Positions 17,898-25,473 of a stretch of 64,000 nt of DNA are shown here, in pieces. How positions within the stretch are numbered: the first letter of the stretch is position 1; each line of letters begins with the position of its first letter. The notes beneath the pieces were generated by a model, which was not told the DNA's origin, ran no database searches, and was given only the letters and a program-made list of their open reading frames with translations. Source of the DNA: Rebecca billardiae RCC1528 (Eukaryota > Protista > Haptophyta); contig OZ251222.1 of the NCBI GenBank assembly GCA_965240325.2, positions 4,402,001 to 4,466,000 of the forward strand, in the 5' to 3' direction. Both the position numbers and the translations under genes were made by a program.

Positions 17898-19283
17898 TCA
17901 ATTACTCGTCAACGACGCTAATGATGATGATCCATGCGTGGCGGCGGGAGGCGGGATACTGCGACGCTCCTGTTCGCAAAGCGCGCGCGCGGCGAGAGCA
18001 CTGAGCGGTAGTGGCATTGGGCCCGGGGCCGACGCACGTGTCTGCGGCCCTGCGCCGGCCTCAGCCGAGCACAGCCTGGCTGGCTGCATCCACTCGGCCG
18101 CACACGCGTGCATGTGTGCGGCGGGCACGCCCAGCCGCATGCACAGGGCGATGGCGAAGCGATGATGTGCGCGGGCCACGCCGCCGTCCTCGGCTTCGTC
18201 GCGCGCGGCGACACCCCACGCCCGCCCGCCGTCGCCGCCCGCCGCCCTGCCCCTGCCCCCTCGCGCTGCATCGGCCTCGCGTGCGCGCGCGAGGGCCTGG
18301 GCGAGCTCGAGCTCAGCGCGTGCGAGCTGCCACTGCACCGCCACGGGTCGGCTGGCTGGGGACGGGGGGAAGATCGCAGCCAGCACGCAGCTCTGCCGCT
18401 GGAACCGCGCGGAGCTGTCCGTGGTGTGCGAGCGCAGCAGCCGCTCGGTGCGCCCGAGCTCAGCGCGCAGTGCAGCGGGCAGGGCGGCGCCGCCCGCACC
18501 CGCGCCGGGGCCGTCGGCGGTGGGCAACCGAGCGTGGAGCCAGGCTCGCTGCACGCCAGCGTAGTAGTTTGCGCGCTTCGCGGCGGTGGCCGCGTCGCAC
18601 CGCACAAGCTCGCGCACGAGAAGCGCTTCAGGCAGCCTTGGCTCCACGCGCACAGGCGGCGTTGTGCCGCGTGGGTGCGGCGCGGTGCGCTGCGTGGCCT
18701 CCGTCAGCAGCCACCTGCGGTGCGCCCACGCATCGGGCGCCGACGGAAAGCGCGCGAGCACGAGCGCGCTCAGAGCAAGCTCACCCCGCAGTGCACGTTC
18801 GTGCGCGTCCTCGGCCGCATCGGCGCCTTCGCCCCGCCGCGCCTCCTCCTGCTGCAGCAGCAGCCGCTTGCGCGCGTGCCAGGCCGAGTAGCAATGGCCG
18901 TTCAGCAAGACGAGCACGCGCGACGCGGCGCGGAGCTGGGCGAGCAGCTGCGACATGCCCTCGTCGAGCACGGCGGTGGATCCGTTGCACACGTGCGCCG
19001 CTGCAAGAGCGCGCTGGCGCTGGGTCCATCCCGCGCACGTGCGGGCCTCTGCGTGCGTGGCTGGCAGGCTCCACTTGGCGATGGCCAGCTGCCGCCCGCC
19101 GTCACAGACGGCGAGCTGCGCCTTGGCTTGCCGCGTGCCGCTCGCAGGGAAGACGAGCCGGCAGGTTGGCTCGGCGACTGCAATCTCCTCGCACGAGGGC
19201 ACGAACTCGTAGCCCTCGAGCGCAACCTCGGCGTCCAGCGTCGCGTCGAGGACGTCCATCATGCCCGCCTGCGCAGCCGCCAT
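17898..19283 (-). CDS. Protein prenyltransferase alpha-subunit repeat protein (PTAR1-like)
   Basis: PPTA-type repeats: LLNGHCYSAWHARKRLL, ELALSALVLARFPSAPDAWAHRRWLL, KRANYYAGVQRAWL, LLRSHTTDSSARFQR. Confidence 0.8.
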   Translation of the reverse strand: MAAAQAGMMDVLDATLDAEVALEGYEFVPSCEEIAVAEPTCRLVFPASGTRQAKAQLAVCDGGRQLAIAKWSLPATHAEARTCAGWTQRQRALAAAHVCNGSTAVLDEGMSQLLAQLRAASRVLVLLNGHCYSAWHARKRLLLQQEEARRGEGADAAEDAHERALRGELALSALVLARFPSAPDAWAHRRWLLTEATQRTAPHPRGTTPPVRVEPRLPEALLVRELVRCDAATAAKRANYYAGVQRAWLHARLPTADGPGAGAGGAALPAALRAELGRTERLLRSHTTDSSARFQRQSCVLAAIFPPSPASRPVAVQWQLARAELELAQALARAREADAARGGRGRAAGGDGGRAWGVAARDEAEDGGVARAHHRFAIALCMRLGVPAAHMHACAAEWMQPARLCSAEAGAGPQTRASAPGPMPLPLSALAARALCEQERRSIPPPAATHGSSSLASLTSN

Positions 19284-19455: not shown

Positions 19456-19666
19456 AGTAATCGTCGTCGTCTTGCTCCCGGGTTCGTGTAAAAATGGCGC
19501 GCAGCAGACGGCGCAGCGACAGTGCTCCGTCCGCCTCACCCTCGGTCGTCATCTATATGAGCTGCTGCTTGTCGTCGTCAGACGTCACCGGCGACGGCGG
19601 CGACGTCGTGATGACGGCAGCGGCCGGCCTTGACGATGCCAAGGTATACTGCCACGTATTCGCTCG

Positions 19667-19668
<2 letters not shown>

Positions 19669-19761
<93 letters not shown>
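19669..19761. repeat. (AT)n microsatellite
   Basis: Seen directly. Confidence 0.97.
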
Positions 19762-19867: not shown

Positions 19868-22800
19868 TTATGACGACTGGCCGCGCGCCGGCGACGCCGC
19901 GGACACCGCTCGCGCCGGCGGAGCGCGGGCGCCAGCCGGGCTCCGGCTTGGCCTGCGCGCCGGCGATGACGCAGCGCCGTGGTTCCTGTCGATCCACAGC
20001 GGTGGTCGCGCAAAGTAGGCGCTGTGCCCCGCCCTGCGTGGTGCCGGCGCCGGCATGTCGTACGCGCCCATCGCCGTCCAGTGGAACCCCGCGCTCTGGT
20101 GCTTCCGCCGCGTGGGCGACGGCGCGAGGCGCGAGTTGGTGCGCGGCAGCACGCCGCCGATCGGGTGCCCGTAGGCGTCCAGCTCGTGGCTGTGCGCCCT
20201 CGAGTTGCTCGCCCCCGTCGAGTCTGGCCGCAGCGCGTACACGTCGCCGGAGGCGACGCGCGAGTGCACGGCGCCGTCGCCCGCTGGCGGCGCGGCCGCG
20301 CTCGTGCTGAAGCGGTGCGCGTGCGCCTGCCCTCCAGGCGACCACGCGCCCGACGCACCGCGCGACTGCGAGCGCTTGTAGAACACGTCCGCGGCCGACC
20401 ACGCGCCCGACGTGCTGCTGCTCGCGCGCACGCTCGCGCAGTGGGTGGCGGCCGTGTTTGGCTGCGGCGCGACGCGCGTCGGGCTGCGCGCGCCGAAGAT
20501 CTGGCTGCCGTAGTTGGACGAGGAGCGCGTGTCCGAGCCGACGCTGGGCGGGCGGTGCTGGTGCAGCGCGGCCGCGACAGACAGCGTGATCAGCGGCGCT
20601 GGCCTGGGCGCGGGCGGCGGCGAGACCTTGGCCATCCGGCCGCGCGAGAGCGGCAGCGGCATGAACTGATCGGAGGCGCGCCCACTCCGGCCCGCCGAGG
20701 ACTGATCGGAGCCGCGCGCACTCCGGCCTGCCGATGGCTGATCGGAGGGGCGCGCACACCGGCCCATCGCTGTGTCCTCCCGGGGCAGCCCGGGCAGCGC
20801 CGCGCCGCGGAGGCAGGAGCCGCCCTGCTCGGCCGCCGAGGCGGGCTCGCCGGTCAGCCTCCGGAGGCGCGCGCCCACCGCGACGCCCGGGCGGACGTTG
20901 GGCATGGAGCCGACGACCGAGCGCTCGAAGGGCGCCGGGTTGGGCGGGCTCGGTGTGGCCTCCCGCGCGCCGGCTGAGGCGGTCACGTTGGGCATCGAGC
21001 CGACGACCGAGCGCCTGAACGGCGGCGGCGTCAGCATCGCCGTGATCGTCGCGCGTGGGCCGCGCCTGCCCAACGACCGCCCTTGCGTGAAGCTGCCCGA
21101 CGCCTCGTCCGCCGGCGCGCACGAGCCGGCGCCGAGCGAGTAGGCGCCGCTGGTCGGCGCGTCGGCGTCGGCGGCGGCGGGCGCGGCGCCGGGGCCCGAG
21201 CGCGCCGAGCAGGCGGAGCACCGCCCATCCTTCGACTCTGGCACCGACATCGTGCTCCCTCGGCGTGAGCTCAGCTCGCGGATCAGCGCGAGCTCGTGCG
21301 GCACGAACAGCCCGCCACCGCTCGGCTCGCCCTCCCGCGCCTCCGGCCCGCGCACCTCCGGCTCGCGGGCCTCAGGCGACTCACGGCGCGAGCGCTCGGC
21401 AGAGCGCTCGCCCTGCCACGGCGCGCGCAGGCGGCGGCCCGCCTCCGGCGTGGCGTCCTCCTCCCACAGGAAGCTCGCGATCGCGCTGCGCAGCATCGCC
21501 TGCACGCTCGCGTTGAACGCGTCGGTCGCGCCGCCGTCGTCCGCGCCGCCGCCGAGCCTGGCGTCCGGCGGCGCAAACGTGGCGGCGATGAGCGCGTTGA
21601 TCATCTGCTTGTCCGCCTCGACGGTCGCCTGCGCCGTGCGCGCGTCGAAGGCGGAGAGCGCGCTCTGCACGCGCGCCAGGTCGGTGCGCACCGCGTGCCG
21701 CAGCGCCTCGAGCTCGTCCGGCGCGATGGTCAGCTCGAAGCGCACGCCTTGCAGCCAGCACTGCACCACCTCGTACAGGCACCACACGCGCGTGAGGCAC
21801 ACGGGCGCGTCCCACGGGTCTGCGCGCGGCGGCGCGGCGCGGGCGCGCCGAGGGCGGGGCGGGGCGCACCCGATCAGCTCGGGGCGGCGCCGGGCGCTTG
21901 GGCGGCGGCGGCGCGCGCAGTTTGCTCGGTGCACGCGCGGTGTGCGCGCAGCGTGCGCGCGGTGCACGACGCGCGCGCACCGAGCACCATCACCACGCGG
22001 CCGACGGAGCGCTCGATGGCCCCGATCTGTGCCACCTCCGCCTCGACCTCGTGCTGCCGGATGCCTGCGGCGTGCGGTGGGGGGCGGTAGGGGGAGCAGC
22101 ACGGCGCGCGCGCGCACGGGCACGTGGTCAGGCACGCCGGCGCGGCGGAGCCAGCCAGCGCAGCGCGCGCGGCGGTGCGCCCACACAGGCCGACGCGCGC
22201 GCGCGCTGCGCCGCGTGCGCAGGCCGCTGCACAGTGCACGCACAGAAGATGTCGAGCCAGAGGTACGTCTGCTCCGCGCCCAGGTTGTGCATCTTGAGGT
22301 ACGCCAGCACCGCCGAGAGCATCTTGGCGAACGAGCAGCACTGCGCGTGCGAGATGAACTGCACAACGCACAGCGCCCGCAGCCGCGCGCGCGCGCGCGG
22401 CGGGCGGGCGGAGGGCGCGTGAGCCGGCTGCAGGCGGGCGGCGGGAGCCATCGAGGCAGGCGTGGCGCAGACGCGAACCGCGCGCCACACGAGCAGCGCG
22501 CGCGCACCAGGTTGGCCTCGGCGACCGCGGCAACGCCGTCCTGCGTCTGCGCAGAGGCGCACATCTCGGCGATGGACCAGCCGGCCGACGAGGCGGTGAG
22601 CTCGCGCACGGACTGGGCCACCTCGAGCGTCGTCGCCTCCTCCGGAATCTCGCGCGCCGAGATGAACTCGTCAATCATCGCGAGGCTGACGCCGAGCAGC
22701 AGGTGCGCCGGCATGGGCCCGGCGTCCGGGAGGCCCGTGTCGCGGATGATGATGGGCGGCTTGGGCCGGAGGCTGCCCTTGCGCACGCGGCTGTCGGTGG

Positions 22801-24247
22801 GCTCGTCGTACGCGACGAGGGCGGAGAGCTTGAAGCCCATCCACAACTCCCGGAGCGCAAGCAGCGCGCGGCGCAGCGGCCCGCGCAGCACGCGCACGCC
22901 GATCGGCCGGAGCAGCGCGCACTGCGCGTGGCTCACCGCGAGCGCGGCGGCGACGTGCGCGCCGAGCAGCGCGTACCGCGCCCACGGGAGGTAGTAGGCG
23001 AAGGTGAGCGCGGGGAAGCCGGCGACGAGCGCGACCACGCGCAGGATGACGACGTGCTGCATCGTGTCCACGAGCCGCTCCGACAGGAGCCGCGGCAGCG
23101 AGCTCGCCTGGGCGAGCGCGCGCGCTCGCGCCCACCACCACACGAACGGCGCGAGCACGCACAGGTCCACGCACAAGAAGCTGAGGCGCAGTAGCGCGAT
23201 GAAGGTCACCGTGGCGTGCGCGGCGCTCGCAAGCGTGCCAAGCACGGTGCACGCGAGCACCACGAGAGCGGGCCACAGCGGACTCGAGCGCGCCTCGGCG
23301 CGCACGCAGCCGCAGCGCGCGCCCGGCGCCCGTGGCGGCTCGGGCACGCGCGAGAGCCGCAGCGAGGCGAGGCCCTGCGACAGGCTCAGGCGCGAGAAGT
23401 ACAGGAGAAAAAGCACGGCGGACAGCAGCGCGAGCCACAGCGTCAGCGCATGCAGCGCGCACGCCACCTCCGCCGGCAGCCAGCCGCGCGACAGCTCGGG
23501 GTCGACGGCTAGTAGCAGCACGCGCCCCGTGTTGGCGGCCAGTTCGAGCAGCAGCATCAGCTGCGGGATCGAGCCGAGGCGCACGCCCCGGTCGGCGTAG
23601 ATGAACGCCTCGAGGCGGAATGTCGCGAGCTCGATGACGACGCACGCGCCGAGCGCGAGCACGCCCTGCCACACCGACCACGCAGCCGAGACGTGCATGC
23701 GCGCCCACGCCGACGGCATGAGCGGAGTGGCCGCGAGGCGCGCCGTGGGGCGCTCGCCGCGCCGCAGCAAGCTGACGAGCGCACCGACCTCGGCCTGTTG
23801 CACGTCGACGACGGGCAGAAGGCCGCCGCCCGCGACGGCGCCTCTGCCGCCGAGCCGCCACATCAGCGCCGCGTGGCCGGGCACGACAGAGAAGTGATCT
23901 TGCCACGGCTGGCGAAGCAGGAGCGCCGCTGCACCGGCGCGCGCGGCCTCCGCGGCGAGCTGCTCGAGCGTGCAACGAGAAGCCCGTGGCGAGTCAACGA
24001 GGACGAGCGCCCCGTTCATCACCGCAGGCTCGGCTTCAAAACGCGGTGGGCACGTCGCCGCTGCGAGCGAGACGGACACGAGCGGCCCCGACACGTCAAA
24101 CGATGAGCGGCGTGCGAACGCATAGGGCTCGGCGAGCAGCGTGTGGTTGGCGGACCAGCTCGGCGAGTCCGTAATGATGAGGACGGCGCGCACCGGACTC
24201 GCCACGGCGAGCGCGAGTGCCACGAGCACGAGCGCGCGCTGCCGCAT
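19868..24247 (-). CDS. Signal peptide + PA-like ectodomain + 7TM + cytosolic HET/TIR-like domain + long disordered tail; introns 22359..22507, 22065..22243, 21820..21980
   Basis: MRQRALVLVALALAVASPVRA signal; NGALVLVD...CTLEQLAAEAARAGAAALLL...LPVVDV (PA-like); seven hydrophobic segments; spliced domain FISHAQ...YLWLDIFCIRQH...VMVLDPWDAPVCLTRVWCLYE. Confidence 0.7.
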   Translation of the reverse strand: MRQRALVLVALALAVASPVRAVLIITDSPSWSANHTLLAEPYAFARRSSFDVSGPLVSVSLAAATCPPRFEAEPAVMNGALVLVDSPRASRCTLEQLAAEAARAGAAALLLRQPWQDHFSVVPGHAALMWRLGGRGAVAGGGLLPVVDVQQAEVGALVSLLRRGERPTARLAATPLMPSAWARMHVSAAWSVWQGVLALGACVVIELATFRLEAFIYADRGVRLGSIPQLMLLLELAANTGRVLLLAVDPELSRGWLPAEVACALHALTLWLALLSAVLFLLYFSRLSLSQGLASLRLSRVPEPPRAPGARCGCVRAEARSSPLWPALVVLACTVLGTLASAAHATVTFIALLRLSFLCVDLCVLAPFVWWWARARALAQASSLPRLLSERLVDTMQHVVILRVVALVAGFPALTFAYYLPWARYALLGAHVAAALAVSHAQCALLRPIGVRVLRGPLRRALLALRELWMGFKLSALVAYDEPTDSRVRKGSLRPKPPIIIRDTGLPDAGPMPAHLLLGVSLAMIDEFISAREIPEEATTLEVAQSVRELTASSAGWSIAEMCASAQTQDGVAAVAEANLVRARCSCGARFASAPRLPRWLPPPACSRLTRPPPARRARARGCGRCALCSSSRTRSAARSPRCSRRCWRTSRCTTWARSRRTSGSTSSVRALCSGLRTRRSARARRPVWAHRRARCAGWLRRAGVPDHVPVRARAVLLPLPPPTARRRHPAARGRGGGGTDRGHRALRRPRGDGARCARVVHRAHAARTPRVHRANCARRRRPSARRRPELIGCAPPRPRRARAAPPRADPWDAPVCLTRVWCLYEVVQCWLQGVRFELTIAPDELEALRHAVRTDLARVQSALSAFDARTAQATVEADKQMINALIAATFAPPDARLGGGADDGGATDAFNASVQAMLRSAIASFLWEEDATPEAGRRLRAPWQGERSAERSRRESPEAREPEVRGPEAREGEPSGGGLFVPHELALIRELSSRRGSTMSVPESKDGRCSACSARSGPGAAPAAADADAPTSGAYSLGAGSCAPADEASGSFTQGRSLGRRGPRATITAMLTPPPFRRSVVGSMPNVTASAGAREATPSPPNPAPFERSVVGSMPNVRPGVAVGARLRRLTGEPASAAEQGGSCLRGAALPGLPREDTAMGRCARPSDQPSAGRSARGSDQSSAGRSGRASDQFMPLPLSRGRMAKVSPPPAPRPAPLITLSVAAALHQHRPPSVGSDTRSSSNYGSQIFGARSPTRVAPQPNTAATHCASVRASSSTSGAWSAADVFYKRSQSRGASGAWSPGGQAHAHRFSTSAAAPPAGDGAVHSRVASGDVYALRPDSTGASNSRAHSHELDAYGHPIGGVLPRTNSRLAPSPTRRKHQSAGFHWTAMGAYDMPAPAPRRAGHSAYFARPPLWIDRNHGAASSPARRPSRSPAGARAPPARAVSAASPARGQSS

Positions 24248-24412: not shown

Positions 24413-25473
24413 CTTCACCGAAATCCAGGCTGGGGAGGCTAAACGCTGCACTGGTGGGGAGGCTAACAGCCTCCCCGCTCTCCCAGCGTGGGGAGGCTAG
24501 CGCTCCGCCGCTCCGGTCTTTCGCCGCTGACAAAACTTTAGAAAACGAAAGTCGCGCCATGGCGGACCCGGTGTTCCCGCGCGGCGGCGAAAGGGGCGCG
24601 GGGCCGGTGGCTCGCGATCCGAAGGGCAGTAGCTCGCGACCTCGCTTGGGCGGCGGCAGTGGCGCTGTGGCCCGGCGTGCACCATCCGCGCGGCTGTGCG
24701 CGATCGCGCGGTCCCGTTCGTCGCCACGCCGCGCGCGACCGTTCACGCCACAGCCTTTCCGCACTGGCATGCACCCCTTGCAAGCGCATGACGGCGGAGA
24801 GCTCAGAGAGCCCGTCACGCGCGTGACGACCGTGTGGGATGGGTTGTACAGCTTGTCTCCATGGTCAGGGAGGCACGCGCCGGCCCACGAGGCGGGCATG
24901 AGGATCATGAATGGCTGCTGTACTGTCCACAACTCCATGGCCGCGCGGCAGGCGATGACTCATCTTGCAGCAGTTAGGAATGGTCTGAACGTTGGATGGG
25001 CTCATCAGAAAGCCTACGAAGGCAGCGTTCACATCGGCACAACCCATCCCACACGGTCGTCACGCGCGTGACGGGCTCTCTGAGCTCTCCGCCGTCATGC
25101 GCTTGCAAGGGGTGCATGCCAGTGCGGAAAGGCTGTGGCGTGAACGGTCGCGCGCGGCGTGGCGACGAACGGGACCGCGCGATCGCGCACAGCCGCGCGG
25201 ATGGTGCACGCCGGGCCACAGCGCCACTGCCGCCGCCCAAGCGAGGTCGCGAGCTACTGCCCTTCGGATCGCGAGCCACCGGCCCCGCGCCCCTTTCGCC
25301 GCCGCGCGGGAACACCGGGTCCGCCATGGCGCGACTTTCGTTTTCTAAAGTTTTGTCAGCGGCGAAAGACCGGAGCGGCGGAGCGCTAGCCTCCCCACGC
25401 TGGGAGAGCGGGGAGGCTGTTAGCCTCCCCACCAGTGCAGCGTTTAGCCTCCCCAGCCTGGATTTCGGTGAAG
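24413..25473. mobile_element. Foldback/MITE-like non-autonomous DNA element: 435-bp terminal inverted repeats (24413..24847 and 25039..25473) around a 191-bp spacer
   Basis: The arms are reverse complements with no mismatch noticed by eye. The ORF track gives identical peptides on opposite strands (for example MATNGTARS... at 24497-24727 minus and 25159-25389 plus). Confidence 0.8.

Follow-up and report, generated by a model that had tools for sequence, protein, structure and literature searches.

Can a single algal gene encode a membrane receptor that carries its own TIR-like effector inside the cell, and, if it does, is that effector likely to be an enzyme? The question is raised by a locus of the haptophyte Rebecca billardiae RCC1528, on the minus strand of a 64,000-nucleotide stretch of contig OZ251222.1 (assembly GCA_965240325.2, positions 4,402,001 to 4,466,000), hereafter called the window. 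A preliminary description, made from the letters of the window alone, had seen there a signal peptide, a PA-like ectodomain and seven transmembrane (TM) segments, followed by a cytosolic domain of HET or TIR character. We find one gene and one protein, consisting of a signal peptide, a PA domain, a seven-transmembrane (7TM) core, a cytosolic domain and a disordered tail. With moderate confidence, we read this protein as a one-chain membrane receptor of a lineage-expanded family, in which sensing is linked to a cytosolic, possibly nucleotide-cleaving domain of the TIR/HET type.

The receptor gene runs from 24247 to 19868, and three-frame translation together with a reading of the junctions gives four exons, three GT-AG introns and a coding sequence of 3891 nt (1296 codons). 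Its start is the first ATG beyond a low-GC leader. The parts of the gene are listed below in the direction of transcription (aa, amino acids; GC3, GC content at third codon positions; AF2, AlphaFold2; GPCR, G-protein-coupled receptor).

24247-22508, minus strand: exon 1, 580 codons
24185..24247, minus strand: start codon and signal peptide, aa 1-21, MRQRALVLVALALAVASPVRA (hydropathy peak 2.49 at aa 7-25)
23714..24184, minus strand: PA-fold ectodomain, aa about 22-178 (Pfam, Foldseek, AF2)
22913..23686, minus strand: seven TM helices with a GPCR fold, aa 188-445 (hydropathy and AF2)
22703..22912, minus strand: helix 8 and cytosolic linker, aa 446-515 (AF2 helix 457-469)
22508..22702, minus strand: N-terminal part of the cytosolic domain at the end of exon 1, LLLGVSLAMIDEF..AEANL (tblastn with the domain of paralogue L013, residues 4-67)
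22359..22507, minus strand: intron 1, 149 nt, GTGCGCGC..TTGTGCAG, without codon periodicity
22358-22244, minus strand: exon 2, FISHAQ..YLWLDIF-C, strand A, helix A and strand B of the cytosolic domain
22065..22243, minus strand: intron 2, 179 nt, GTGCGTGC..CGCCGCAG, splitting a Cys codon
22064-21981, minus strand: exon 3, C-IRQHEVEAEVAQIGAIERSVGRVVMVL-D, helix B and strand C of the cytosolic domain
21820..21980, minus strand: intron 3, 161 nt, GTGCGCGC..GCGCGCAG, splitting an Asp codon
21819-19868, minus strand: exon 4, domain part and then tail, ending with a TAA stop
21458..21819, minus strand: domain part of exon 4, DPWDAPVCLTRVWCLYE..FDARTAQAT..DKQMI..ASFLW, helix C to the last helix (59 own-genome matches; GC3 0.98)
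21770..21772, minus strand: codon of the conserved Glu in RVWCLYE (WxxxE), candidate catalytic residue (paralogue alignment)
19868..21457, minus strand: disordered tail of about 530 aa, rich in Ala, Ser, Arg, Pro and Gly, with the TAA stop (GC3, paralogue)

All three introns begin with GTGCG and end with CAG, and splicing rejoins the two split codons to give LDIF-C-IRQH and VVMVL-D-PWD, strings that the preliminary description had quoted. GC3 is 0.92 in exon 1, 1.0 in exon 2, 0.96 in exon 3, 0.98 in the domain part of exon 4 and 0.89-0.96 in the tail, and no GC3 periodicity is seen in the introns and flanks. Exons 2, 3 and 4 are collinear with residues 581-617, 620-646 and 648-763 of the uninterrupted public protein P0001, and single-residue gaps in this alignment coincide with the split codons. 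The paralogue L013 on contig C16 holds the whole architecture in one intronless open frame (..ATLFVSHAQ..FLWLDLFCIRQHEVE..VVMVLDPWDAPVCLTRVWCLYE..) and is 47% identical to the window gene over exon 1 and 54-81% identical over the domain pieces. Because L013 keeps the same order in one frame and exons 2-4 are collinear with P0001, we take both the splice model and the fusion to be real. The junctions, GC3 and P0001 thus bear out the proposal that three introns interrupt the domain, and the frame of L013, P0001 and GC3 likewise support a single gene for a single protein in the order PA, 7TM, cytosolic domain. For the searches described below, the exons of the window were used one by one, and L013 served as stand-in for the intact cytosolic domain.

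The tail adds to the earlier account: the sequence down to 19868 is also coding, with the GC3 bias kept in frame throughout. It aligns in frame with the tail of a paralogue on contig C11 at 41-44% protein identity (E 6e-20), and no Pfam family was found in it. Internal repeats at 20560-20760 and 20920-21060 contain SDQ-x-SAGRS-x-RG three times and F-x-RSVVGSMPNV twice, the latter also appearing as an 86% direct repeat by blastn.

What lies ahead of the cytosolic domain was examined by profile, fold and hydropathy. The PA domain (PF02225) is found in exon 1 with 21.7 bits (E 2.2e-4), slightly below the cut-off of 23.9. Foldseek matched the ectodomain to the PA domain of an aminopeptidase and to those of ZNRF3/RNF43, VSR1 and GRAIL (E 1e-4 to 5e-3, best 1.2e-4; probability 1.0), and the predicted fold is clearly PA. 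An AF2 model of positions 22838-24247 of the window, built with 15 relatives (predicted local distance difference test score, pLDDT, 81), shows a beta-rich part at residues 21-173, seven long helices at 188-445 and helix 8 at 457-469; the hydropathy profile shows the signal peptide and six clear TM peaks. A fold search with the model found a GPCR fold for the seven-helix core, whose N-terminus is predicted to lie outside and its C-terminus inside; the matches with a GPCR fold include the lysosomal LYCHOS (rank 29). At the sequence level, no 7TM Pfam family matched the window exons at E up to 10, and no DRY or NPxxY motif was seen by eye in the 7TM core. The genome holds one candidate G-alpha gene. 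Helix 8 and the linker form the most conserved stretch among close paralogues (60-80% identity). The order of signal peptide, PA-like ectodomain, seven TM segments and domain is therefore supported by Pfam and Foldseek, hydropathy and AF2, and the scaffold is GPCR-like in fold, as had been proposed. Since the protein has a signal peptide and seven helices and its predicted inner loops are richer in Lys and Arg, we place the cytosolic domain inside the cell, again in agreement with the first proposal.

The cytosolic domain itself spans roughly 250 residues. An AF2 model of the L013 copy (L013:3109-3900, pLDDT 90.7) consists of an N-terminal helical part (strand 6-9, helices 10-49) and then alternating strands and helices, with a TIR-like fold over residues 63-252. 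At the level of the fold it has what characterizes the TIR superfamily, a flavodoxin-like alpha/beta arrangement in which strands alternate with helices. When the model was searched with Foldseek, the top rows were nearly all TIR domains (RPP1, RPS4, RPPT, SARM1, AbTir, MAL, SPARTA; E 0.035-0.7). Most of the best 25 rows of a VIA search were TIR as well, the best single match being the enzyme SARM1, and adaptor TIRs (MyD88, IL-18R beta, MAL, TRIF, TRAM) reached scores similar to those of enzymatic TIRs. In TIR NADases, the catalytic Glu sits where helix C begins, after the third strand. In the L013 model, the Glu of W-C-L-Y-E lies in helix 145-156, just past strand 129-132, which is the third strand. 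An alignment of 13 intronless domain copies from this genome (A1) has W101, D103, P135, W136, R144, W146, L148, E150 and R194 among its invariant positions. The Glu, W146 and W136 are kept in all 32 paralogue loci compared (32/32), the R-x-W-C-L-x-E surrounding the Glu is invariant in the same 32 and across distant relatives, and the Glu of WxxxE is invariant in alignments A1, A4 and A6. At H71 the window reads FISHAQ; the 'R' at this place in the paralogue comparison is an alignment artefact, the high-scoring segment pair entering intron 1. The L013 model, the fold searches and the paralogues agree with the original proposal of a TIR-like, flavodoxin-type fold with an invariant WxxxE Glu.

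To which family, then, does the domain belong? It had been read as HET, and membership of that family is not upheld. Pfam HET (PF06985, gathering cut-off 22.5 bits) matched neither the window exons (E up to 10) nor intact L013, and all scores among relatives are sub-threshold, the best being 18.6 bits for P0088 (E 0.0026), with 13.7 bits for P0001. HET reached E <= 0.01 in 4 of 30 and 2 of 29 relatives scanned, none of them at the cut-off, and, TPR families aside, no other Pfam family recurs among the relatives; the weak HET matches cover profile positions 31-91, the W-x-D-x-x-C-I-x-Q block (block 2). A six-frame scan of the genome with PF06985 was empty, as were those of control genomes, and is hence uninformative. 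The HET consensus runs from S-H/Y at strand A through W-x-D-x-x-C-I-x-Q at strand B to R-x-W-x-x-x-E at helix C. The alignment of the present family has F-V-S-H-A, W-x-D-x-F-x-x-R/N-Q and L-T-R-x-W-C-L-x-E in order. Two Diacronema relatives are named 'Heterokaryon incompatibility domain-containing' in UniRef, and a word search with the domain profile, aimed at HET-annotated proteins, gave 16 hits, none with PF06985. On the TIR side, PF13676 and PF01582 matched neither the window nor L013, one relative touches TIR_2 at E 0.025, and hhalign to the TIR_2 domains of this genome aligned strand A through strand B (P 7e-4). PADLOC returned nothing, a sequence profile searched against the PDB gave chance-level rows only, and the protein atlas brought up no clusters but unnamed eukaryotic ones, since HNOB (0.76), the closest that bears a name, is at chance level. 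Because the Pfam HET hits are only sub-threshold (18.6 versus 22.5 bits), we file the cytosolic domain as a distinct sister family of the TIR/HET kind that has no Pfam family of its own, and not as a demonstrated member of PF06985. The same genome also has at least 10 loci with canonical TIR_2 above the Pfam cut-off (C13:293189, C5:1949398, C34:1015527, C13:1545244 and others), some of them tandem pairs within one frame, so the alga possesses classical TIR proteins besides the HET-like family.

The receptor is one of many. Across the genome (72 Mb, 41 contigs), exon 1 finds 46 distinct loci and the cytosolic domain 59 matches. The domain lies 0.2-3.1 kb downstream on the same strand at 35 of the 46 PA-7TM loci, and two further PA-7TM loci (L014 and L017) show it by tblastn. 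Among the paralogues, identity falls to 22-32% in the PA and TM parts and is 31-59% in the domain; judged by these sequences, the family appears to couple a variable sensor to a conserved output. Outside this genome, a HMMER search with A1 over 1.84 billion representatives found 6,417 cluster representatives at E <= 0.001 and 3,626 at E <= 1e-10. Homologous PA, 7TM and domain together occur in at least 24 of the best 150 matches, Diacronema lutheri proteins included, and the nearest named relatives are Pavlovales (44-47% identity), by which the alga would probably be a haptophyte of the pavlovophyte type. The domain also follows unrelated multi-TM cores that the PA and 7TM profiles do not recognize (P0085, P0088, P0108, P0114), from which we infer that it was fused to membrane sensors more than once. 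As had been stated for protists, relatives with the domain N-terminal to TPR arrays are common: TPR_10/TPR_12 arrays follow it in 46 of the 59 soluble relatives scanned (P0036, P0037, P0043 and others; alignment A4). These domain-TPR proteins could partner the receptors. They have an NLR-like design of 'effector plus repeats', with no NOD module detected. One Diacronema protein is labelled 'RGS domain-containing' in UniRef, a label that the Pfam scan did not reproduce.

If these parts work together, the following sequence of events can be envisaged. After cleavage of the signal peptide, the PA-fold domain is predicted to lie outside the cell or in a lumen, with the GPCR-fold bundle of seven helices crossing the membrane. 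Capture of a ligand by the PA domain or by the helix bundle would shift the receptor into another conformation or oligomeric state and thereby bring the cytosolic TIR/HET-like domains together. TIR domains need assembly to act. Once assembled, the domains may use the invariant WxxxE Glu to cleave NAD+ or a related nucleotide, and the output, a nucleotide second messenger or the loss of NAD+, might set off a response of the defence, self/non-self or cell-death kind. Tool results stand behind the gene model and its single frame, all three folds, the topology, the conserved Glu and the expanded family. Enzymatic cleavage of nucleotides by the domain is a step that we hold only tentatively.

Several points weigh against this interpretation. 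The structure of the domain was predicted for the paralogue L013 and not for the spliced protein of the window, and the candidate equivalence of its Glu to E642 of SARM1 rests on its position (past strand C, where helix C begins) and on the motif. The curated threshold is reached for neither HET nor TIR, and the hhalign match to TIR_2 has a probability of only 26% over 42 columns. Location at the cell surface is assumed. Many animal TIR domains are adaptors, not enzymes, and the mechanism by which HET domains kill is unknown (PMC10890737).

The strongest alternative follows from the adaptor nature of such TIRs. Here the domain would have no enzymatic activity and, upon ligand binding, would recruit soluble domain-TPR partners by homotypic contact, much as the TIRs of Toll-like receptors (TLRs), MyD88 and TRIF do. 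The near-equal scores of adaptor and enzymatic TIRs in the fold search speak for it, potential partners exist in the 46 of 59 soluble relatives in which the same domain heads a TPR array, and HET itself was put forward as an adaptor by Dyrka et al. (PMC4986451). However, the invariant Glu and the R-x-W-C-L-x-E around it fit a catalytic residue better than a contact surface, and the best single fold match is an enzyme, SARM1; we consider the adaptor unlikely, if a serious contender. Endomembrane sorting, a convergent fold and an artefact of the gene model are each less likely than this.

As an endomembrane cargo or sorting receptor, or another trafficking protein, the PA domain would bind lumenal cargo and the cytosolic domain would be regulatory. 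VSR1 and the PA domains of GRAIL/RNF proteins among the fold matches, and the GPCR fold of the lysosomal LYCHOS, would suit such a role. Yet a set of about 46-55 paralogues that have diverged but conserve an effector-like domain resembles a recognition repertoire and not housekeeping sorting, and no sorting motifs or partner domains were found, which makes this explanation improbable. Slightly more improbable still is a domain functionally unrelated to TIR/HET, with a generic flavodoxin-like or nucleoside-deoxyribosyltransferase-like fold that acts on some other small molecule and resembles the motif by convergence: TIR domains make up the majority of the top 25 VIA rows and almost all of the top Foldseek rows, the weak non-TPR Pfam hits of the relatives are mainly to HET (recurring) with a single weak one to TIR_2, and hhalign registers strands A and B with true TIR_2 domains. 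That two adjacent genes, or a pseudogene read through, were mistaken for one in a region of ~75% GC, where stops are rare and long accidental open frames abound, has a negligible chance of being right given the one-frame, intronless L013, the collinearity with uninterrupted homologues, GC3 periodicity in all exons with none in the introns, and a PA-7TM/domain linkage kept at at least 35 loci.

The surroundings of the gene show some further features. Directly 3' of the receptor stop lies a long (TA)n microsatellite (about 19640-19760), AT-rich against the 75% GC of the gene body, and the neighbouring frame at 17898-19283 (minus strand, 461 aa) matches the protein prenyltransferase alpha-subunit repeat (PF01239, E 1.8e-7). 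Positions 24413-24847 and 25039-25473, some 170 nt upstream of the receptor start codon, are the two arms of a perfect inverted repeat (435 nt each, 100% complementary, with a spacer of 191 nt). Pfam matched none of the frames inside it, and its origin could lie in a recent palindromic duplication, in a foldback element or in an artefact of assembly.

Returning to a one-chain receptor with a nucleotide-cleaving TIR/HET-type domain, what would follow if it is true? The receptor would add a class to the protist GPCR-bigrams, since a TIR/HET-type accessory domain is absent from the six classes described, and it would provide a compact system for asking what such a domain does chemically. As a ligand-gated receptor, it would for the first time let one read what a HET-type domain produces biochemically, and it would represent an innate-immune or self/non-self system built on a scaffold unlike those of TLRs and NLRs. 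TIR signalling in microalgae has been noticed only recently, and the very large domain family to which the receptor belongs (>6,400 cluster representatives at E <= 0.001) has no Pfam entry of its own. Dozens of divergent copies with an unvarying Glu could mark a haptophyte-type recognition repertoire against viruses, bacteria or foreign cells. The broader idea that pavlovophyte algae possess some 50 one-component GPCR-fold receptors, which turn outside signals into NAD-derived messengers or NAD+ loss by means of a fused TIR/HET-type enzyme, is in our estimate somewhat doubtful.

How does the receptor compare with systems already known? The combination of PA, 7TM and TIR/HET was not found in the literature searched for it, and the resemblances are to parts of several systems. 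With the PA-TM-RING E3 ligases (ZNRF3, RNF43, GRAIL) and the plant vacuolar sorting receptors it shares a PA-fold ectodomain as the ligand-binding module, but these are single-pass proteins with RING or EGF modules and have no 7TM core followed by a TIR-like tail. The TIR NADases SARM1, the plant TIRs and bacterial ThsB/SpbK show no significant sequence similarity to its domain.

HET domains induce cell death and are distant relatives of TIR, and haptophytes have homologues of them (PMC4986451, PMC10890737). Dyrka et al. drew the link between HET and TIR over three blocks that end at helix C (PMC4986451). Fungal HET domains (het-e, tol, het-6, Bh) seem to share three blocks in the same order with the domain of the receptor, and they resemble it in their remote relationship to TIR, their large paralogous families and their fusion to repeat arrays (here TPR, in the soluble relatives). 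In contrast, they are N-terminal in soluble proteins or NLRs and have never been described behind a 7TM core, whereas the domain of the receptor stays below the Pfam cut-off in every set examined and is extended by a helical part at its N-terminus and by further helices at its C-terminus.

In the haptophyte Gephyrocapsa huxleyi, TIR genes whose membrane-anchored products have a part outside the cell or multiple TM helices respond early to virus (PMC12489294). These proteins, TLRs and IL-1 receptors are like the receptor in combining an outer ligand domain, a membrane anchor and an inner TIR fold with a conserved Glu. TLRs differ in being single-pass with leucine-rich-repeat ectodomains, and the G. 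huxleyi genes are defined by canonical Pfam TIR families, which the domain of the receptor fails to match; it instead follows a PA domain and a GPCR-fold core.

The GPCR-bigrams of oomycetes, slime moulds and other protists share its basic plan, a 7TM core and a cytosolic signalling or catalytic domain in one chain, which couples sensing to output directly (PMC5784254). Their classes are PIPK, TKL, INPP, AC, PDE and AP, with no TIR or HET (van den Hoogen et al. 2018, PMC5784254); the described classes thus have neither a TIR/HET-type domain nor a PA ectodomain, and the 7TM part of the receptor falls into no named sequence family. Like the receptor, GPCR-bigrams belong to multi-copy families and are found in unicellular eukaryotes of aquatic habitats, among them haptophytes. 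What defines them, a 7TM core and an accessory signalling domain in a single polypeptide, is found here in the open frame of L013, in the spliced gene of the window and at no fewer than 35 linked loci.

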